A stretch of 64,000 nucleotides of DNA from Obrimoposthia wandeli (lineage: Eukaryota), in contig CDROCS010000506.1 of NCBI GenBank assembly GCA_977020255.1, positions 2,108,001 to 2,172,000 on the forward strand, written 5' to 3'. A program made the position numbers and the translations under genes. Under the pieces are notes generated by a model. The model had not been told where the DNA came from and ran no database searches. It saw only the letters and a program-made list of their open reading frames with translations. Positions 49,731-63,427 of this stretch are shown one piece after another (positions within the stretch are counted from its first letter, which is position 1; the number at the start of each line of letters is the position of its first letter).

Positions 49731-50665
49731 GCGTCGGCGTTATTGTAAACTTCAGTTAAAATTTCTTTTGCACCTTGTGCAAGTAGGGTATCAGCAAGTG
49801 CTAAACCTAATTCGCGGGCATTTTTACGGTCGCCACGGATTTCAGCGCGGATAACTTCAGTACCATCTGGCTTGCCAACAAGGCCGCGTAACCACAGTTC
49901 ATCACCGTCGATTAGTGCATAACTACCAATTGGCACCTGACAACCACCTTCAAGCGCTAAGTTCATTGCGCGTTCAGCCCATACTCGATCACTGGTTAAG
50001 GCGTGGTTCAATGGTGCTAGGATTGCTTTAACACGTTCATCATCAATGCGACATTCAATGCCTACTGCACCTTGGCCAACAGCAGGTAGACTTTGCTCTG
50101 GTTCAATATAACTGGCAATACGGTATTCCATATCCAGGCGTTTAAGACCTGCGGCTGCAAGAATAATTGCGTCATAATCTTTATTATCAAGTTTGTTTAA
50201 ACGGGTGTTAACGTTACCGCGTAAATTCATGATTTTTAGATCTGGGCGGGCTTCACTTAGCTGACATTCGCGACGTAAGCTACATGTACCGACGATTGCG
50301 CCTGGTGGTAACTCTTCGATTCTTTTGTAAGTATTTGAAACGAAAGCATCACGAGGATCTTCACGTTCACAAATAACTTCTAAGCCTAAACCTTCTGGAA
50401 ATTCAACTGGCACATCTTTCATTGAATGCACGGCAATATCTGCACGGTTATCAAGCATTGCAACTTCAAGTTCTTTTACAAAAAGGCCTTTACCACCCAC
50501 TTTTGCTAACGGCGTATCTAAAATGATGTCACCTTTCGTTACCATAGGAACAAGTTCAACGGTAAGGTTTTGATGGATCGATTCTAAACGTGCTTTTACA
50601 TACTCAGCTTGCCACATTGCAAGTGGACTTTTACGGGTTGCAATTCTTAGTGTTTCAGTAGCCAT
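49727..50665 (-). CDS. hemC: Hydroxymethylbilane synthase
   Basis: [32 protein letters not shown]. Confidence 0.98.
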
Positions 50666-50869
50666 GATATTTCCAAATTTAACTAGATTGGCTAAATATT
50701 AACAGATTTCCCCCATTAATGGTTGATCTAAGATGGGGTTATTTGTAAAAAATACGGTTAATTTAACCACTCGATAACATATAGAATCGGATTGAAAGTA
50801 GCGGCTTATTTAATGAGAACTGCAGCTATCATTTTAAAGTATAGGAGGAGGATTAAGTATGGGGATGGA

Positions 50870-50906
50870 ATATTACGCTGCTGCTTATTCTGCAACAGCG
50901 TAATAT
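50870..50906. terminator. Hairpin at the 3' end of the cus islet
   Basis: ATATTACGCTG...CAGCGTAATAT 11-bp stem; weak U tract. Confidence 0.5.
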
Positions 50907-50910
50907 ATTA

Positions 50911-50950
50911 GTTAGACGTGATTAGTCGTAGTTAGTCATAGTTAGTCGCA
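50911..50950. repeat. Four imperfect 10-bp tandem repeats (GTTAGTCRTA) overlapping a stop codon
   Basis: GTTAGACGTG ATTAGTCGTA GTTAGTCATA GTTAGTCGCA. Confidence 0.7.
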
Positions 50951-51433
50951 ATTAAGGCGAAATGCTTTATGGCTTTTTTTGATGTGCTGCTTAATGTCAC
51001 CCAGTACCGTTTTTACTTGGCCTTTTGATGTTGCGTCTTGAAGCTGAGTAAAGAGGCTGGTTAATTTTTCAATGCCTTGTTGGTAAGCCATGTGCTGCAT
51101 ATGGGTGCTATGGTCCATACCTTCCATATCTTTCATATTCGCCATCTTGCTATGATCCATGCCTTTCATTGCGGGCATTTCTTGCTGTAGCTTCAAAGGG
51201 ATTTCATTTTTGGCTTTGGCGCTGTTGGCCAATAGTTTAGTTAATTGAGCTTTCATCTCAGCTTGGTCATCACGTTTGAATGCGCCGACATATGCTTTTA
51301 AATCATCACTCATTGCTGACATAACACTGCCTAATTGGGTGTCTTTACAGTGGCCGTCACCATCACCGTGGGCAAATACTGGTGAACTGAGTGCGGCGCT
51401 AAGGGTGATTGCGATAGTTAATTGTTTAAACAT
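50942..51433 (-). CDS. Periplasmic cytochrome b562-fold protein with Met/His-rich insertion
   Basis: Sec signal (..PVFA); TQLGSVM aligns with b562 ADLEDNM, KKSHKAFR with NAYHQKYR; a 30-aa loop has 9 Met and 4 His. Start moved to ATG 51433 (SD AAGGA). Confidence 0.75.
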   Translation of the reverse strand: MFKQLTIAITLSAALSSPVFAHGDGDGHCKDTQLGSVMSAMSDDLKAYVGAFKRDDQAEMKAQLTKLLANSAKAKNEIPLKLQQEMPAMKGMDHSKMANMKDMEGMDHSTHMQHMAYQQGIEKLTSLFTQLQDATSKGQVKTVLGDIKQHIKKSHKAFRLNCD

Positions 51434-51467
51434 TGCTTTTCCTTTATCTATTATTTTAAGTTTGAGT

Positions 51468-54400
51468 TTATTTATTTGTCGTTTCAATATCTTGCTCATT
51501 AACCATTTGTGATTTTAAGCTGATTGATTTCCACAGATAGAAAGAGGCTGGTAACACTAACAGTGTCAGAATGATGGCTGAAGCCATGCCACCAATCATA
51601 GGTGCAGCAATGCGTTGCATAACTTGAGAGCCGGTACCGTCACCATACATAATCGGGATCAAGCCTATTATTACGGTTGCTACTGTCATCATGATTGGGC
51701 GTACACGTAGTCCTGCGCCATCCATTATCGCTTGCTGTAATTTGGCTTTGGTGAAATTACCTGCCGCCAGTGCTGCTGCTAAGGATTGATTTAAATAAAC
51801 TAACATGATCACGCCAATTTCAACTGCAACACCGGCGAGAGCGATAAAGCCGACCCCAACCGCAATCGAGAAGTTGTAGTTGAGCAAGTACAATAACCAG
51901 ATACCACCAATCATAGCGAGCGGTAATGTCGCGAGAATGAGTAGTACCTCACCAACACGTCTAAAGGCGAGATAAAGTAATAACACGATAATAGCGAGGG
52001 TGGCAGGGATCACGACAGATAAGGTGTCTTTGGCACGTTGCATATATTCGTATTGTCCAGACCAAGCAATTGAATAACCGGTAGGTAATACTAACTGTTC
52101 GGCAACGGCTTGCTGAGCATCTACGACATAAGAACCGAGATCTCGGCCTTCGATATCCACATAAACCCAACCATTAGGGCGAGCGTTTTCTGTTTTAATC
52201 ATCGGCGCGCCGTCTTCGACATAGATATTAGCGACATCACTTAAGGCAATCCTAGCGCCTTGGGGTGTGATCAAGGGTAATAATTTCATTTGTTCAATAC
52301 TATCGCGGTAAGACTGCGGGTAACGAACATTGACAGGATAACGCTCTAATCCTTCGATGGTTTGAGTTACATTAATACCGCCTACTGCCGTTGATATTAC
52401 CTCTTGTACATCGGCAATATTCAATCCATAACGAGCGGCTTTTTCACGCTCAATATCAATTTTCACATAACGTCCGCCAACAACGCGCTCAGCATAGGCT
52501 GATGTAGTACCTGGTACATGTTGTAATATCTTTTCTATTTGCTTGCCAATTTGTTCAATCTCACTCAGTTTTTCACCTGCGATCTTGATGCCAATAGGTG
52601 TCTTTATACCTGTTGCTAGCATGTCGATACGGGTTTTGATCGGCATTACCCAAGCGTTAGTTAAACCTGGGAATTGCACTAACTTATCGAGTTCTTGGCG
52701 TAGACTTTCTGAAGTCATCCCATCACGCCACTGTGACTTTGGTTTTAATGTGATGAAGGTTTCAATCATGGTTAGCGGCGCTGCATCCGTAGCAGTTTCA
52801 GCGCGACCCGCTTTACCCCATACGCGTTCTACTTCGGGGACTGTTTTGATTAATTTATTGGTTTGTTGTAATAACTCCCGAGCTTTACCTATGCTGATAC
52901 CAGGGTAGGTGGTGGGCATATACATGAGATCACCTTCATCCAGCGGTGGAATAAATTCACTGCCGATCTTAGTAACAGGGTAAAAGCCGACAGCAACAAG
53001 GCCAATGACGATAGAAAGTAGCAGTACCGGTGCTTTCAGTGTGAATGCTAATGCCGGGCGGTATAACGCGATTAGACCGCGGTTGATTGGGTTTTTATGC
53101 TCAGGTAATACGTTACCGCGAATGAAGTAACCCATTAATATTGGCACTAAGGTCACCGCGAGTCCTGCTGATGCTGCCATTGCATAGGTTTTCGTAAAGG
53201 CGAGCGGGGCAAACATTTTCCCTTCTTGGCCTTCGAGTACGAATACAGGGACGAAACTAAAAGTAATAATAAGTAGTGAGAAGAACAGTGCTGGACCAAC
53301 TTCCGCAGCTGCTTTACTGATTACTTGCCAACGGTTTTTATCTGTTAATGGCGTCTTTTCGATATGTTTATGGACATTTTCAACCATCACAATTGCGCCA
53401 TCAACCATGGCACCAATGGCGATAGCTATCCCACCCAATGACATGATGTTGGCATTAATGCCTTGCCATGACATAACGATAAAGGCCACAAGAATACCAA
53501 TCGGTAAACTGACCAATACCACTAACGAACTGCGAATGTGGAATAGGAATAATGCACAAACAACAATAACGACAAGAAACTCTTCCAATAATTTAAGGTA
53601 GAGATTGTCGACTGCATTATCGATTAATGTTGAACGATCATATGTAGTAACAATCTCAACGCCTTCAGGTAGTGAGGCTTGTAACGTTTGAATTTTTTCT
53701 TTGACTGCAGCGATGACATCTCGAGCATTTTCACCGTAACGCATGACAATAATGCCGCCAACGACTTCACCTTCGCCGTCGAGTTCAGAAACACCTCGGC
53801 GCATTTGTGGGCCAAGGACAATATCGGCGACATCGCCTAATAATAATGGCGTGCCTGTTGCGCTGGTTTTTAAAGGAATATTTTTTAAGTCATCGATTGA
53901 GCTGATATAACCACTCGCACGGACCATGTATTCGGCTTCAGCCATTTCGATAACGCTAGCGCCAGCTTCTTGGTTTCCACGTTTGATCGCATTGGTAATT
54001 AACGATAATGGGATCTGGTAGCTGCGCAGTTTATCTGGATTGACGCTTATCTGATATTGCTTGACCATACCGCCAACGGTTGCGACTTCAGAGACGCCTG
54101 CAACAGTTTGTAGTTCATATTTTAAGAACCAATCTTGGATACTACGCAGTTGGCTTAAATCGTGATTACCGCTGGTATCGGTTAACGCATAGGAATATAC
54201 CCAACCCACGCCTGTAGCGTCAGGGCCTAGCGCTGGTTTTGCTGTGCTAGGAAGATTCGGCGTTACCTGTGATAGATATTCTAATACTCGTGATCGAGCC
54301 CAGTACATGTCAGTGCCATCGTCGAAGATAACGTAAACATAAGAGTCGCCGAAGAATGAGTAACCGCGTACTGTTTTTGCACCAGGTACAGATAACATGG

Positions 54401-54614
54401 CGGTCGTTAATGGGTAGGTCACTTGATCTTCGACTACTTGTGGCGCTTGCCCCGGGTAAGTGGTTTTAATGATAACTTGGACATCAGAGAGGTCGGGAAT
54501 GGCGTCAACTGGGGTGTTTTTGATTACAAAACTACCGTAGATAAGGACGACCAAGGTTGCTAATAACACCATGATGCGATTGTGTATCGACCATTCAATT
54601 ATTCTTTTGATCAT
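51468..54614 (-). CDS. cusA: Cu(I)/Ag(I) HME-RND efflux pump
   Basis: DAIPDLSDVQV, LGPDATGVGW; Met triad conserved (DLMYMP, PLTMIET, RIDMLATG). Confidence 0.96.
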   Translation of the reverse strand: MIKRIIEWSIHNRIMVLLATLVVLIYGSFVIKNTPVDAIPDLSDVQVIIKTTYPGQAPQVVEDQVTYPLTTAMLSVPGAKTVRGYSFFGDSYVYVIFDDGTDMYWARSRVLEYLSQVTPNLPSTAKPALGPDATGVGWVYSYALTDTSGNHDLSQLRSIQDWFLKYELQTVAGVSEVATVGGMVKQYQISVNPDKLRSYQIPLSLITNAIKRGNQEAGASVIEMAEAEYMVRASGYISSIDDLKNIPLKTSATGTPLLLGDVADIVLGPQMRRGVSELDGEGEVVGGIIVMRYGENARDVIAAVKEKIQTLQASLPEGVEIVTTYDRSTLIDNAVDNLYLKLLEEFLVVIVVCALFLFHIRSSLVVLVSLPIGILVAFIVMSWQGINANIMSLGGIAIAIGAMVDGAIVMVENVHKHIEKTPLTDKNRWQVISKAAAEVGPALFFSLLIITFSFVPVFVLEGQEGKMFAPLAFTKTYAMAASAGLAVTLVPILMGYFIRGNVLPEHKNPINRGLIALYRPALAFTLKAPVLLLSIVIGLVAVGFYPVTKIGSEFIPPLDEGDLMYMPTTYPGISIGKARELLQQTNKLIKTVPEVERVWGKAGRAETATDAAPLTMIETFITLKPKSQWRDGMTSESLRQELDKLVQFPGLTNAWVMPIKTRIDMLATGIKTPIGIKIAGEKLSEIEQIGKQIEKILQHVPGTTSAYAERVVGGRYVKIDIEREKAARYGLNIADVQEVISTAVGGINVTQTIEGLERYPVNVRYPQSYRDSIEQMKLLPLITPQGARIALSDVANIYVEDGAPMIKTENARPNGWVYVDIEGRDLGSYVVDAQQAVAEQLVLPTGYSIAWSGQYEYMQRAKDTLSVVIPATLAIIVLLLYLAFRRVGEVLLILATLPLAMIGGIWLLYLLNYNFSIAVGVGFIALAGVAVEIGVIMLVYLNQSLAAALAAGNFTKAKLQQAIMDGAGLRVRPIMMTVATVIIGLIPIMYGDGTGSQVMQRIAAPMIGGMASAIILTLLVLPASFYLWKSISLKSQMVNEQDIETTNK

Positions 54615-56092
54615 TACAGCTCTCCCTCATCATCAAAATCTAACCAAGATAAATCATCTTCAGCACTGCTATCCGTCGATACTGGCGTGGCCTCTGTACT
54701 CATTTTACTGTGATCCATTTGCAGCATGTCATCGTGGTTCATCTTGCTATGGTCCATTGCCATGTTATTTGTTGTCGGCGAACCTATTCGGCTAAAATCG
54801 GCGGTTAAGCTTGATTCTGAATCCAGTAGGAATTGAGCGCTAGTGACGATTTTGTCGCCCTCGTTAAGTCCTGCGAGTACCTCGACATAACCTGCAGATT
54901 CTCTGCCTAATGTGATCTTGATTGATTGGTATTGACCGTCGCCTTTGGCAAGTACGATGCGATCAAGTGTGCCGGAACGAATTATTGCCTCACGCGGAAC
55001 TTGTATTGAATCTGCTTGCTGCTGGCTGTCCAATGTTAATGTGGCAAACATGTTTGGTTTTAACCGCTCATCTGGATTGGCTATTTTAATTCTTACTTTT
55101 AGCGTTCGGATCGCGGCGTTTAATTCTGGGTAAATGTAATCCACTTCTCCCAGCCAAGTTTGGCCTGGAAAGCTGTCTACTTGCATAGTCGCTTTATCAC
55201 CGATGTTTACCTGACTTGCTTGAGACTCAAAAATTTCGGCTTGTAACCATATTTCAGTTAATAGCCCTGCTGTTATTATTTGCACCGCAGGTGAAATATA
55301 AGCACCTTCACGAATCGCTAGTTCAGTGATATAACCGGATTTTGGGGCTGATATAGTGACATTTTGGATCACTTTTTGAGTTCGGCTGATCTGTTTAACC
55401 TGTGCTTGGCTGATACCTAATGCAGATAAACGTTGTTTTGCCGATCTGATGAGGATGTTATTACCGATACGTAGCGTATTGAGCAATTCTTCCTGTGCTT
55501 TAATCAGTTCTGGTGAATATAAGGTGAATAGTGGTTGTCCTTTGGTGACGAACTCACCGGTATTATTGATATAGAGTTGATCAACCCAACCAGAAACGCG
55601 ACTGTTAATTTGCCAGAGTGAATCCTGATTAAATTCCAATATACCGACGGTATTTATTTGCGATGTGAAAGGGCGACGCTGTGCCGTTTGTGTGCGGACG
55701 CCTAAGTTATTTTCTACACGCGCTGATATGGTCACTAAACCTGCATCGCTTGCCGTTGTGACATCTTCGTAAACAGGAACTAAATCCATGCCCATTGGCG
55801 ATTGACCGGGTTTATCTCGACGATAGTTCGCATCCATAGGCGCAACCCAATATAGCGGTTCTTGCACTGTTGTTTGAGCTACTGTTTGTGATTTTTTAGC
55901 ATAAACAGGGACTAAATCCATGCCCATTGGTGATTGACCTGGTTTATCTCGACGGTAGTTAGCATCCATCGGTGCGACCCAATATAAGATCTCTGGTTCT
56001 GCGTTTGTAGTATTTGTTGTTGGTGTACTGAACCACGTACCCGCTGCAAGGCCCAATGCCAATGTAATTGAGCTAGTTAGTAATGTTTTCAT
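54614..56092 (-). CDS. cusB: CusB-type adaptor with two HMBD repeats and a Met/His tail
   Basis: Two YWVAPMD..PMGMDLVP domains, MFP core (LYSPEL, YPEL, LKPNM), tail MAMDHSKMNHDDMLQMDHSKM. Confidence 0.93.
   Translation of the reverse strand: MKTLLTSSITLALGLAAGTWFSTPTTNTTNAEPEILYWVAPMDANYRRDKPGQSPMGMDLVPVYAKKSQTVAQTTVQEPLYWVAPMDANYRRDKPGQSPMGMDLVPVYEDVTTASDAGLVTISARVENNLGVRTQTAQRRPFTSQINTVGILEFNQDSLWQINSRVSGWVDQLYINNTGEFVTKGQPLFTLYSPELIKAQEELLNTLRIGNNILIRSAKQRLSALGISQAQVKQISRTQKVIQNVTISAPKSGYITELAIREGAYISPAVQIITAGLLTEIWLQAEIFESQASQVNIGDKATMQVDSFPGQTWLGEVDYIYPELNAAIRTLKVRIKIANPDERLKPNMFATLTLDSQQQADSIQVPREAIIRSGTLDRIVLAKGDGQYQSIKITLGRESAGYVEVLAGLNEGDKIVTSAQFLLDSESSLTADFSRIGSPTTNNMAMDHSKMNHDDMLQMDHSKMSTEATPVSTDSSAEDDLSWLDFDDEGEL
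55770..55984 (-). repeat. Internal duplication in cusB (83-bp copies at 55770-55852 and 55902-55984)
   Basis: Identical 28-aa peptides; 8 nucleotide differences, all synonymous. Confidence 0.95.
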
Positions 56093-56100
56093 ATCAGCCT

Positions 56101-57357
56101 CTATAATGCTTGAAAATAACGAATGCGCGCTAAGGTTTTTAAATTTTGAAAGTGTAATTGTTGGTATTCAAGCGTGAGTGCTTGTTCATCCATTAATGCG
56201 TTGATGACCTGTTCAAAATCATTGGTATTGGTTTGATAACCTTGTATTGCGGCATCACTATTGGCTTTGGCTTGCACGAGAAGGGTATCTTGGTAACGCT
56301 GCATACGGGCTTTGGTATTACTGAAATTAGCAATTGCACCATTTAATATGCCATTGAATTTAATCAATAATAAATCTTTTTCTGCTTGTTTAATGCCTTT
56401 TCCTTGAGTCGCCGAGATAACGACTTGGTCTTGACGATTACTGGTGAATAGTGGGATGTTCATCGAGACTGAGCCGCTGATTAAATCACTACGACTGGAT
56501 CCGGTCGCCATATCTAGCGCTTCACGATGGCCGTAACCAATATCAACTTTAAAGGCTGGTTTATAAGATTCATTCGCAGTAGCTATATTGTTCTGAGCAA
56601 CATCAATGGCTTGTTGCGCAGCCAATACTTGTGGGTGACCAGCCAATAATTGGTAATGTTTTATGTCGGCTTGTTGTACATATTCAAGACTCTGCGGCCA
56701 AGTTGGCAGTTGCGTTGAAAATGTATCAAACGCTTGTGGGCCAACCAAAGAGACAAGTTGACCGCGTAGTGCTTGTTCTTGTTGCGCAAACGCCGCAATT
56801 TTATCATCAAATTTGGCCAGTTCTAATTCTGCTTTAATGAGGTCTTGATTTTGACGATAACCTAACTCGAATTGACGGTAGAGGTTGGTGACATGCTGAC
56901 TAAATAACTGCTGATTTTTGGCTAGTATGCTTTGGGCTATTTTGGCAAAGCGAATATCAAACCATAATTCACGGATCTGCAGTTTTAATTCTAATTGACG
57001 GTTTTCAGCTAATAGTATGCTTTGCTGTGCCTGTAAGGAAAAACCTTTCGCGGTTAATTCCAGGGAATCTCCGGCTGAAAATTGCTGTGACAGACCGAGA
57101 CTAAACTGGGTCATTGGGTCATCGGATAGTGATAAGCTATCAACTGGCACATTATTCAAGCCGAATTTTATCATTGGATCGGCAAGTTGTGAGCGGCTGA
57201 TACCTTGTGCAATTAAGCTGGCTTGTTGTGCGCTGTATAGTGTGGCAGATGGATCGCGTTTTAGGGCGATATCCTCGGCAACAGACAGCGTCAATTGTTG
57301 AGCATTCGCATTGATCGTTAACAATGCGAATAACCCCAAATATATTTTGGATGGCAT
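56101..57357 (-). CDS. TolC-family outer membrane factor of the cus operon
   Basis: Signal peptide, LADPMIKFG, FKVDIGYG, SMNIPLF; operon position. No lipobox. Confidence 0.88.
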   Translation of the reverse strand: MPSKIYLGLFALLTINANAQQLTLSVAEDIALKRDPSATLYSAQQASLIAQGISRSQLADPMIKFGLNNVPVDSLSLSDDPMTQFSLGLSQQFSAGDSLELTAKGFSLQAQQSILLAENRQLELKLQIRELWFDIRFAKIAQSILAKNQQLFSQHVTNLYRQFELGYRQNQDLIKAELELAKFDDKIAAFAQQEQALRGQLVSLVGPQAFDTFSTQLPTWPQSLEYVQQADIKHYQLLAGHPQVLAAQQAIDVAQNNIATANESYKPAFKVDIGYGHREALDMATGSSRSDLISGSVSMNIPLFTSNRQDQVVISATQGKGIKQAEKDLLLIKFNGILNGAIANFSNTKARMQRYQDTLLVQAKANSDAAIQGYQTNTNDFEQVINALMDEQALTLEYQQLHFQNLKTLARIRYFQAL

Positions 57358-57396: not shown

Positions 57397-57780
57397 TCAA
57401 TTAATGAGAGGCGGTCGATAGAGGTTATCTTGGTATGTTCTTAAGAAGAGAGTCGGGGAGTGATTAATAATATTGTTTTGTTTGTGGGTATCGATTGTTA
57501 GCTTATCAGGGTTAATAAAGGAGATTAAACTGATGGCATTACAGTCATTACAGGTATCGGTTTGGCAGCAATTATGATGATTACTTTCTGTTTCACCGAT
57601 TACATTGCTGGACTCTGTTGTATCCATACAATGAGTCATATCAGTCATTGTCGTTTTATTTGATGACATACTTTGCATATCGCAAGGCAGATCTGCAGAC
57701 ATAGCATACTGACTCATTGCCTGAAGCGGTAATGAGAAGGTGTTGATTAAGATTAATAAAATCAATAATACTATACGCAT
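57397..57780 (-). CDS. Secreted Cys/His/Met-rich protein with C-terminal RPP (DUF2946/CzcI-like architecture)
   Basis: Signal peptide, HHNCC..CNDC, Met-rich, ends LYRPPLIN; first gene after the promoter. Confidence 0.75.
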   Translation of the reverse strand: MRIVLLILLILINTFSLPLQAMSQYAMSADLPCDMQSMSSNKTTMTDMTHCMDTTESSNVIGETESNHHNCCQTDTCNDCNAISLISFINPDKLTIDTHKQNNIINHSPTLFLRTYQDNLYRPPLIN

Positions 57781-57824
57781 GAAAAGTTCGTTATCAGCAA
57801 TAAATAAAAATGAATAGACGAGAC

Positions 57825-57855
57825 ATGATAATCGTTACCTTAAGGGGAAGGTCAA
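57825..57855 (-). promoter_or_regulatory. CueR/MerR-type promoter of the cus islet
   Basis: Minus strand TTGACC-TTCCCCTTAAGGTAACGAT(19)-TATCAT; the first 14 nt equal the E. coli copA promoter as I recall it. Confidence 0.8.
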
Positions 57856-57965: not shown

Positions 57966-58041
57966 TGGTGGGCTGTGAAGGATTTGAACCTTCGACCAAT
58001 TGATTAAAAGTCAACTGCTCTACCAACTGAGCTAACAGCCC
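57966..58041 (-). tRNA. tRNA-Lys(TTT)
   Basis: GGGCTGTTAGCTCAG...CTTTTAA...CAGCCCACCA. Confidence 0.97.
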
Positions 58042-58094
58042 CCATGGTCTTTCTTTTTATAGTTTTACGTCTTAAACGTAACACCACAATTAAG

Positions 58095-58170
58095 TGGTGG
58101 GTCCTACTGGGCTTGAACCAGTGACCCTCGCCTTGTAAGGGCGATGCTCTCCCAACTGAGCTAAGGACCC
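58095..58170 (-). tRNA. tRNA-Val(TAC)
   Basis: GGGTCCTTAGCTCAG...CTTACAA...GGACCCACCA. Confidence 0.97.
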
Positions 58171-58209
58171 ACATTATTTTTTAGCGATAGTTGTGGCTAT
58201 CGTATAAAC

Positions 58210-58220
58210 TGGTTGCGGGA

Positions 58221-58279
<59 letters not shown>

Positions 58280-58286
58280 TCCCGCG
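58210..58286 (-). tRNA. tRNA-fMet(CAT), initiator
   Basis: C1:A72 mismatch, GGG/CCC anticodon stem. Confidence 0.97.
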
Positions 58287-58338
58287 ACAATGCTGTTGTG
58301 TACTGTTTCTCTAATAGTAAGAAAGAGCAGTAAGAAAG

Positions 58339-58414
58339 TGGTGGGCTGTGAAGGATTTGAACCTTCGACCAATTGATTAAAAGTCAACTGCTCTACCAAC
58401 TGAGCTAACAGCCC
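58339..58414 (-). tRNA. tRNA-Lys(TTT)
   Basis: Identical to 57966-58041. Confidence 0.97.
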
Positions 58415-58467
58415 CCATGGTCTTTCTTTTTATAGTTTTACGTCTTAAACGTAACACCACAATTAAG

Positions 58468-58543
58468 TGGTGGGTCCTACTGGGCTTGAACCAGTGACCC
58501 TCGCCTTGTAAGGGCGATGCTCTCCCAACTGAGCTAAGGACCC
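58468..58543 (-). tRNA. tRNA-Val(TAC)
   Basis: Identical to 58095-58170. Confidence 0.97.
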
Positions 58544-58582
58544 ACATTATTTTTTAGCGATAGTTGTGGCTATCGTATAAAC

Positions 58583-58593
58583 TGGTTGCGGGA

Positions 58594-58642
<49 letters not shown>

Positions 58643-58659
58643 AACTGCTCCATCCCGCG
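58583..58659 (-). tRNA. tRNA-fMet(CAT), initiator
   Basis: One D-loop difference from 58210-58286. Confidence 0.97.
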
Positions 58660-58682
58660 ACAATACTGTGTTATAAAGAAAG

Positions 58683-58758
58683 TGGTGGGCTGTGAAGGAT
58701 TTGAACCTTCGACCAATTGATTAAAAGTCAACTGCTCTACCAACTGAGCTAACAGCCC
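58683..58758 (-). tRNA. tRNA-Lys(TTT)
   Basis: Identical to the other Lys copies. Confidence 0.97.
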
Positions 58759-58826
58759 CCGAATTCTTTCTTCATAGTAAATCCCGTTACTTATCTTATA
58801 AAAGATATATAACCAGATTTAATATA

Positions 58827-58902
58827 TGGTGGGTCCTACTGGGCTTGAACCAGTGACCCTCGCCTTGTAAGGGCGATGCTCTCCCAACTGAGCTAAGGAC
58901 CC
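58827..58902 (-). tRNA. tRNA-Val(TAC)
   Basis: Identical to the other Val copies. Confidence 0.97.
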
Positions 58903-62767: not shown

Positions 62768-63427
62768 ATGATGAAGACGACCGATAACACCTTTATTGAA
62801 ACAGATTTTAGCGATCAAGATTTAGAATCGATGATCTTTACGCGCTGTGCTTTTTACCGTTGTGATTTTAATCATGCGCAATTAAGTGATGCTGAATTTA
62901 TTGATTGCCAATTTTTTGAAGCGGGCAACCTGTCCGGTTGTCGATTTGATTACGCGGATTTGAAAGGCTGCAGTTTTAAAAATTGTGACTTAAATATGAG
63001 TCTGTTTACTGGTGCCGAATGTTTTGGTATTGAGTTTCGAGGTTGTAATCTACAAGGCGCAGATTTTAACCGAGCTAGCTTTGCTAATTATATCACTCAG
63101 AAAATCTTCTTTTGTTCTGCTTATATAAGCCAATGTAATTTGAGTTATGCCAACCTTGCGGATCAACGCCTCGAAAAGTGTGAGTTGTATGAAAACCGTT
63201 GGACCGGCTGTAATTTAGTTGGGGCATCATTACAGGGTTCAGATCTAAGCCGTGGCGAGTTCTCTCAAGAGAGTTGGTCACAGTTTAATCTGCAACATTG
63301 TAATTTAAGCCATGTAGACCTTACTGGTCTTGACCCTAGACAGGTTCATTTACAAGGGGTGACGATTTGTAGTTGGCAGCAGGAACAACTATTAGCGCCG
63401 TTTGGATTGATTATTGGTGGTGATTAA
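62768..63427 (+). CDS. qnr: Qnr-family pentapeptide repeat protein (QnrA/S/VC-like)
   Basis: 218-219 aa pentapeptide repeats with Qnr hallmarks FCSAYIS.CNLSYAN, LEKCELYENRW, SDLSRG.FS, GLDPR, WQQEQLL. Confidence 0.9.
   Translation: MMKTTDNTFIETDFSDQDLESMIFTRCAFYRCDFNHAQLSDAEFIDCQFFEAGNLSGCRFDYADLKGCSFKNCDLNMSLFTGAECFGIEFRGCNLQGADFNRASFANYITQKIFFCSAYISQCNLSYANLADQRLEKCELYENRWTGCNLVGASLQGSDLSRGEFSQESWSQFNLQHCNLSHVDLTGLDPRQVHLQGVTICSWQQEQLLAPFGLIIGGD

Follow-up and report, generated by a model that had tools for sequence, protein, structure and literature searches.

A copper-efflux (cus) operon of the Moritella type ends with a gene for a member of the cytochrome b562 family, and we propose that this protein has been recruited as an accessory of the CusCBA copper/silver efflux pump. 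The operon lies within 64,000 nucleotides of contig CDROCS010000506.1 (positions 2,108,001 to 2,172,000 of the forward strand) in the Obrimoposthia wandeli assembly GCA_977020255.1; this whole stretch is called the window below, and its first nucleotide is position 1. Between the second and third helices of its four-helix bundle, the protein carries a loop rich in methionine and histidine. It is reasonably probable that the protein carries heme and serves to capture Cu(I) or Ag(I) in the periplasm, either handing these ions to CusCBA or buffering them. An earlier examination of the letters alone, here called the sequence-only reading, had described a b562-fold protein with a copper-binding loop that takes the place of CusF. 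Our analysis confirms this observation, and each prediction open to computation came out as expected, with some qualifications concerning CusF and heme.

A cytochrome b562 homolog with a Met/His loop

The window protein belongs to the cytochrome b562 family and forms a four-helix bundle of the up-down-up-down type. In a search with the Pfam profile Cytochrom_B562 (PF07361), residues 34–159 align with positions 2–102 of the 102-position profile with an E value of 4.1e-6. One point against this assignment is that the protein by itself scores 27.8 bits, just under the curated gathering cutoff of 30. The family profile is decisive here, since a profile made from 45 diverse relatives matches full-length E. 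coli b562 with an E value of 7.6e-11 in HMMER. In addition, PF07361 is matched individually by 44 of 45 relatives (best E value 1.6e-17), and the best ESM Atlas clusters for the protein are cytochrome b562.

The helix-by-helix correspondences to E. coli b562 suggested by the sequence-only reading, including the axial ligands Met7 and His102, are reproduced by HMMER. In the family-profile alignment, Met38 falls on Met7 and His155 on His102, while P79 falls on the PP of ATPPKL, Y117 on F61, and G120 on G64. Likewise, F158 and R159 align with b562 residues Y105 and R106, and a pairwise match to a PDB entry places V37-M38 on N6-M7.

Structure prediction gives a b562-like bundle as well. An AlphaFold2 model of the mature protein made from a 66-sequence alignment has a mean predicted local distance difference test score (pLDDT) of 85.6 and a predicted template-modeling score of 0.76, with helices at mature residues 12–32, 36–54, 87–112, and 116–137, where the pLDDT reaches 93–98. 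This second model improved on a first one from a 23-sequence alignment (pLDDT 67, weak Foldseek E values); the Met/His loop has low pLDDT in both. With the second model, the top 50 PDB matches from Foldseek are essentially all b562 or BRIL, and b562 chains are matched with a probability of 1.00 and template-modeling scores, normalized by target, of 0.77–0.81. VIA-align with the first model gave Z scores of about 10.5 and a root-mean-square deviation of about 3.5 Å over b562 residues 1–106. Against giving the models more weight, four-helix bundles match each other generically, and de novo bundles outscore b562 in VIA-align. Because such generic bundles also match well, it is the sequence profiles that carry the case for homology, with the model serving only to confirm the fold.

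The gene and the protein features discussed below are as follows.

50942..51433, minus strand: b562-family Met/His-loop gene, with ATG at 51433 and stop codon TAA at 50944-50942, encoding 163 amino acids including a signal peptide
51371..51433, minus strand: predicted Sec-type signal peptide MFKQLTIAITLSAALSSPVFA, residues 1–21, with predicted cleavage between VFA and H (sequence, -3/-1 rule)
51347..51370, minus strand: mature N-terminus HGDGDGHC, containing His22, His28, and Cys29 (alignments)
51320..51322, minus strand: codon for Met38, equivalent to axial Met7 of E. coli b562 (HMMER alignments)
51089..51178, minus strand: Met/His segment between helices 2 and 3, residues 86–115, with 9 Met and 4 His
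50969..50971, minus strand: codon for His155, equivalent to axial His102 of E. coli b562 (family-profile alignment)
50948..50950, minus strand: codon for Cys162, the penultimate residue and presumed disulfide partner of Cys29 (paired presence or absence in relatives)

Sec export and the mature N-terminus HGDGDGHC, both proposed earlier, are borne out by the sequence and the -3/-1 rule, and the position of the signal peptide and its A-H junction are kept in homolog alignments. The mature protein of about 142 residues contains no Trp. Its N-terminal motif corresponds to H-x-x-H-C in most relatives, with a three-residue insertion in Moritella. Cys29 and Cys162 are the only cysteines, the latter being the second Cys that had been noticed near the C-terminus, and they probably form a disulfide.

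The Met/His segment, MPAMKGMDHSKMANMKDMEGMDHSTHMQHM, has exactly the composition first reported, with 9 Met and 4 His within 30 residues (51089-51178), and these are clustered in MxxM and MDHxxM spacing. The tandem repeats have the form MDHSxMxxMxxMxG, and two MDHSxM units are followed by a conserved H-x-T-H-M-x-H-M sequence that opens helix 3. MDHSxM and MxxM are classic copper-type Met motifs.

In b562, the heme end of the bundle is where helix 1 begins and helix 4 ends, and it also contains the link from helix 2 to helix 3 and the first residues of helix 3. If this established topology is applied through the family-profile alignment, then the H-x-x-H-C N-terminus, the Met/His loop, the HxTHMxHM sequence, and the C-terminal Cys would all cluster at the presumed heme edge. 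One noncovalent b-type heme is most likely still bound through Met38 and His155. We favor the capture and hand-off function because of these heme-edge features, the MDHSxM loop, and the presence of the same unit, as MDHSKM, in the tail of the CusB protein from this operon. According to this proposal, the protein would be made together with the CusCBA pump, and its loop would capture several periplasmic ions, either Cu(I) or Ag(I). The ions would then be buffered, or handed to CusB (with its MDHSKM tail and two HMBD domains) and onward to CusA.

Compared with E. coli or Salmonella CybC (b562), the window protein is likewise a periplasmic, Sec-exported four-helix bundle with the axial Met and His in register. 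It shares only about 20% identity with E. coli b562, however, which lacks both the N-terminal H-x-x-H-C motif and the C-terminal Cys, and its connection between helices 2 and 3 consists of Met/His tandem repeats. Furthermore, E. coli cybC is a stand-alone gene whose function is unknown (PMC3349551), whereas the window gene resides inside a cus operon.

Position in the operon and comparison with copper proteins

Five co-directional genes make up the operon in the window, and the b562-like gene is the last of them. The other four genes and a downstream stem-loop are listed here in the direction of transcription.

57397..57780, minus strand: CopL-like gene, first in the operon (NCBIfam CopL_fam, 32.9 bits, below the cutoff of 40)
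56101..57357, minus strand: cusC-like outer-membrane factor gene (PF02321)
54614..56092, minus strand: cusB adaptor gene, whose product has two N-terminal HMBD repeats and a tail with two copies of MDHSKM
51468..54614, minus strand: cusA, encoding a heavy-metal resistance-nodulation-division pump of the CusA/CzcA type (TIGR00914, 1284 bits), directly upstream of the b562-like gene
50870..50906, minus strand: stem-loop with a 15-bp stem after the stop codon of the b562-like gene, without a T-run

The sequence-only reading correctly placed the gene at 50942-51433 as the last cus gene, and its strand is minus. The gap of 34 nucleotides after the cusA stop codon (51468-51470) is also as it was given. 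An AAGGA ribosome-binding site lies 7–8 nucleotides 5′ of the ATG. A longer open reading frame from 51499 was considered and rejected; it overlaps cusA and has no ribosome-binding site, and this start is used by no homolog, all of which begin with MFKQ or MLKK.

The stem-loop is likely the end of the cus operon transcript. The 101-nucleotide stretch around it has a folding energy of -24.7 kcal/mol (z -5.5), and other Moritella have a hairpin at the same site 3′ of the gene, with different stem sequences. Contigs from two metatranscriptomes cover the b562-like gene. One of them crosses the junction with cusA (51232-51683), and none covers 50646-50973, a stretch that includes the spacer before hemC. 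Because of this combination, the gene can be read as the last cistron of the cus transcript on evidence that is weak but consistent. The RNA evidence is thin, which counts against leaning on it heavily, and it comes from low-depth metatranscriptome contigs, which can hold DNA. A 10-bp tandem repeat, GACTAACTAN (four copies on the coding strand, 50909-50948), begins where the gene ends, in its final sense codon and stop codon, and is absent from the other aligned Moritella loci.

CusF is a small beta-barrel protein with a His/Met/Met/Trp metal site. Like CusF, the b562-like protein is small and periplasmic, comes from a cus operon, and has candidate Cu(I) ligands based on Met, and its presumed role would be to feed copper to CusB and CusA or to buffer it. 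The two have no sequence or fold relation, however, as the window protein is all-helical and has no Trp for a W-x-x-M-x-M site. The sequence-only view that the protein fills the CusF slot applies only loosely, because cusF lies between cusC and cusB whereas the window gene is last.

The accompanying statement that cusF is missing agrees with our searches. PF11604 (CusF) gives no match for the b562-like protein at E values up to 0.1 and none for CusB, and no CusF is present in the operon or in the rest of the 64-kb window. A tblastn search of the window with the last 150 amino acids of a CusF-bearing CusB (from metagenomic locus L013) found only the CusB tail. As to the suggestion that the protein and cusF exclude each other, the window conforms to it, but the exclusion is not strict. 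Locus L013 has a CusB-CusF fusion beside a Met-rich b562 copy, and the protein therefore does not merely stand in for CusF. We regard it as an alternative or extra accessory in the periplasm rather than a one-for-one replacement of CusF. Among gammaproteobacterial genomes, CusA is found in 60% and CusF in 26%, and most cusCBA systems lack CusF (PMC3548706).

Similarities to SilE and PcoE include a periplasmic location, motifs of the MxxH/HxxM type, genes encoded with copper/silver efflux genes, and a likely role in buffering multiple ions. SilE and PcoE lack a cofactor and stay intrinsically disordered as long as no metal is bound (PMC10407283). The window protein, in contrast, carries its repeats as a loop of a b562 bundle that is modeled with confidence and has conserved heme ligands, and Pfam and NCBIfam scans yielded b562 and weak chance matches only, with none to the SilE or PcoE families.

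The multicopper oxidases CueO, CopA, and PcoA offer another parallel, as they are redox-cofactor proteins with a flexible Met-rich segment (MDH, MxxM) beside an electron-transfer site. In CueO, this segment recruits Cu(I) (PMC11494321). The window protein differs from these oxidases in its length (163 amino acids versus about 500–600), in having no cupredoxin domains, and in its candidate redox center, which would be heme instead of copper. Moritella proteins of this type carry the automatic database name “copper resistance protein CopA” because of the MDHSxM repeat alone. We rejected this name as a low-complexity misannotation, given the absence of a Cu-oxidase domain match and the length of 163 amino acids.

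Relatives, neighboring genes, and the place of heme

HMMER, run exhaustively with a profile of the Moritella proteins, returned about 100 true relatives of 130–245 amino acids. It also picked up many long proteins whose similarity is confined to the Met-rich repeat; these are not relatives. Across the approximately 90 full-length relatives, Pro79 is invariant and Met38 and His155 are near-invariant, the latter two being without exception in alignments A1, A2, and A5, and Cys29, Y117, and Cys162 each occur in at least 90% of relatives. In every full-length relative, Cys29 and Cys162 are either both present or both absent. Where the pair is kept, Met38 and His155 are invariant, and Y117, the counterpart of b562 F61, is retained in at least 90%. 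Thus, the Met/His ligands and the Cys pair to which the sequence-only reading had drawn attention are conserved features of the family.

Loop length is bimodal. Short loops have 7–22 residues with 0–2 Met, and long loops have 26–105 residues with 6–29 Met. In a tree built without the loop columns, a subclade of 39 sequences holds all Met-rich members with 10 short-loop sequences intermixed, which requires at least three changes of loop state; this subclade is not strongly supported (Shimodaira–Hasegawa-like approximate likelihood ratio test value of 84). The repeat unit is MDHSNMANMQxMxG in Moritella, DMPAMNH in the M. dasanensis group, MDHSKMDMADMKG in Psychromonas, and GQMSAEEHAKLM in an uncultured lineage. 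These differences between lineages suggest that the repeats expanded independently. A helix-3 start motif, [MS]-H-x-T-H-M-x-H-M-x-Y, is common to the Met-rich members and is not found in short-loop members. Judged by these sequence characteristics, the window protein belongs to a separate subfamily from marine gammaproteobacteria in which the loop has expanded repeatedly.

Copy number also varies among close relatives. Moritella alleles (P0002-P0028) whose cores are 96% identical have 32 to 105 amino acids in the stretch between residues 82 and 114, owing to different numbers of tandem copies, and the window allele, with 32, is among the shortest. In metatranscriptome run X16, one contig has a loop with one extra 33-nucleotide unit relative to the window.

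Such hypervariable repeat number among near-identical alleles fits a capacity-type function, and it is one reason to consider that the protein is a heme-free metal sponge. By this account, which we judge quite unlikely, the b562 bundle would be a soluble scaffold for repeats that soak up Cu(I) or Ag(I) like PcoE and SilE, and Met38, His155, and the Cys pair would be kept for folding or for an extra metal site in the former heme pocket. The existence of a Psychromonas-like lineage without heme ligands and the usual absence of a b561 partner near cus-linked copies also accord with a sponge. However, the pattern at Met38, His155, Y117, F158, and R159 in proteins that keep the Cys pair is what is expected of a heme pocket, and the needs of folding alone would hardly account for it. 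Moreover, Agarivorans keeps a b561 gene after its Met-rich copy.

Gene neighborhoods were surveyed at about 28 loci; narrower scans gave five genome loci, all from Moritella, and seven metagenome loci. At every locus with recovered context (about 20), the Met-rich member lies directly after cusA, in line with the predicted linkage of Met-loop homologs to cusCBA. These loci comprise the window, five Moritella species, and metagenomic Moritella-like contigs, and also Agarivorans, Psychromonas, an uncultured lineage (L010), and loci L013 and L028. On Tara Oceans contigs, a Met-rich b562 gene after cusA is followed by genes for DUF411, CopC, and CopD.

This recurrence bears on whether the protein might be an ordinary electron carrier that sits beside cus by chance, with a loop produced by low-complexity drift or serving as an oxidant sink. 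An unrelated role is possible in principle, given that b562 has not been assigned a physiological function (PMC3349551). Nevertheless, we consider a chance association highly improbable: the position after cusA recurs across genera in every Met-loop member with recovered context, the loop and the CusB tail are built from the same MDHSxM unit, and the short-loop relatives are not within cus operons.

Short-loop members have a different setting. In three of four distinct contexts (L012, L013/L014, and L026, the last from Marinobacterium), the gene immediately downstream encodes a cytochrome b561 (PF01292); the fourth context (L024/L025) has a solitary b562 gene. These relatives lie outside cus operons, and most of the b562-b561 pairs are not beside copper genes. 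Agarivorans combines both types of context, with the order cusC-cusB-cusA, Met-rich b562, and then b561. Locus L013 has a cus-linked Met-rich copy and, beside it in divergent orientation, a short b562 gene paired with b561. The coordinates of the pairs within their loci are as follows.

L012:9001-10148: short-loop b562 and b561 pair
L013:9001-10342: short-loop b562 and b561 pair
L026:7001-8130: short-loop b562 and b561 pair
L008:7674-8987: Agarivorans Met-rich b562 and b561, after cusA

The Met-rich copy of L013 (1615-2132, minus strand, on a long-read metagenome contig) is split in two frames, owing to a frameshift or to misassembly. In the CusB protein of this locus, a CusF domain is fused on and the MDHSKM tail is long.

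The pairing of short-loop members with b561 and the b561 gene in the Agarivorans cus cluster provide indirect support, by gene order, for a redox-active heme. One version of such a role, which we regard as rather unlikely, is a heme-copper redox chaperone, in which b562 would reduce Cu(II) at a heme-proximal Met/His site and pass Cu(I) to CusB and CusA. The electrons would come from the quinol pool, by way of cytochrome b561 where this is encoded. The midpoint potential of b562 is approximately +170 mV, and Met-stabilized Cu(II)/Cu(I) couples are higher. Because the copper couples exceed the b562 potential, electron flow from quinol through b561 and b562 to Cu(II) would be downhill.

A further reading takes the protein to be a redox enzyme, and not a chaperone only, acting as a heme-dependent cupric reductase or cuprous oxidase. 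Electrons would pass from quinol, via b561 or another donor, to ferrous heme and then to Cu(II) at the N-terminal His site or the loop, giving Cu(I), the only form that CusCBA exports; in the reverse variant, Cu(I) would be oxidized and the electrons would go to quinone. The heme ligands are strictly conserved in the Moritella clade, and the loop, the N-terminal His and Cys residues, and the C-terminal Cys map to the heme end according to b562 topology and the alignment. Both features are compatible with an enzyme, as are the b561 partners of short-loop relatives and the cusCBA-b562-b561 order of Agarivorans. In contrast, no b561 gene is near the Moritella, Psychromonas, L010, or L015 copies, one lineage without the His and Cys residues is still linked to cus, and the short b562-b561 pairs are mostly away from copper genes. 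Enzymatic activity of this kind therefore seems unlikely to us. More generally, a redox role receives little credence because b561 is absent from the vicinity of most cus-linked copies and from the window, and because of the lineage lacking His and Cys.

The same observations bear on the heme-carrying capture and hand-off function that we favor, and several of them weigh against it. No b561 gene occurs within the 64-kb window, and a word-limited search with the Agarivorans b561 did not include a Moritella protein among the matches listed. Furthermore, the Psychromonas-like lineage (P0053, P0056, and others, including one protein from a complete genome) lacks His155 and both Cys residues and yet keeps the loop, and P0053, on L028, lies directly after cusA. 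Because this lineage stays behind cusA, heme is not needed everywhere for the cus-linked role.

The b562 fold, Met-rich copper motifs, and cus operons are each known, and their combination and the b562-b561 pairing appear to be undescribed. Work on cytochrome b562 as a model protein goes back decades. The PMC open-access and bioRxiv literature yielded no description that links b562 to copper, to cus, or to pairing with b561, in agreement with the sequence-only reading, whose author knew of no report of such a component. A study of Met-rich domains (PMC11494321) makes no mention of b562, and the physiological function of the soluble cytochrome is still given as unknown (PMC3349551).

The subfamily offers a concrete and easily expressed candidate for how cusCBA systems without CusF collect periplasmic copper, and it bears on the question of how Cu(I) for Cus export is obtained from Cu(II). 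It also provides a well-understood heme scaffold with a natural copper-type loop at the presumed heme edge. The b562-b561 and cusCBA-b562-b561 arrangements are testable leads to the role of b562, and the pairing may point to a physiological role for the soluble cytochrome as a partner of membrane b561. If the redox chaperone proposal were true, then copper redox conversion would be coupled to efflux in CusF-less systems, and this would be the first physiological role for the b562 family, as a soluble partner of membrane b561. The general impact is limited because the known range is narrow, comprising Moritella, Psychromonas, Agarivorans, and uncultured marine relatives.

Surroundings of the operon

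Upstream of the cus operon are a tRNA array and cyaA, and downstream, after a gap of 276 nucleotides, are hemCDXY. The array (57966-58902, minus strand) consists of eight tRNA genes in which Lys-Val-Met is repeated. The operon keeps this syntenic location, between the array and hemCDXY and next to cyaA, in four of the five Moritella species; in M. dasanensis (L005), hemC is missing downstream of the cus operon.

The two HMBD repeats of the window CusB (residues 35–64 and 79–108) are identical. Its C-terminal tail has two copies of MDHSKM, the unit of the b562-like loop, followed by a terminal acidic motif, DDLSWLDFDDEGEL. Met-rich CusB tails like this one, with the same unit, are found in Agarivorans and L013 and not in Psychromonas or L015.

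The CopL-like protein is small, exported, and rich in Cys, Met, and His, and it ends in LYRPPLIN. The first gene of the cus operons from Agarivorans, L010, and L015 likewise encodes a protein with a C-terminal YRPP ending. A promoter-like sequence, TTGACC-N19-TATCAT (57824-57855, minus strand), contains in its spacer the dyad ACCTT-N6-AAGGT, which resembles those of MerR/CueR regulators; the dyad of the E. coli copA promoter is longer. A Pfam scan identified a gene for a pentapeptide-repeat protein (Qnr-like, 219 amino acids) at 62768-63427 on the plus strand, downstream of cyaA.

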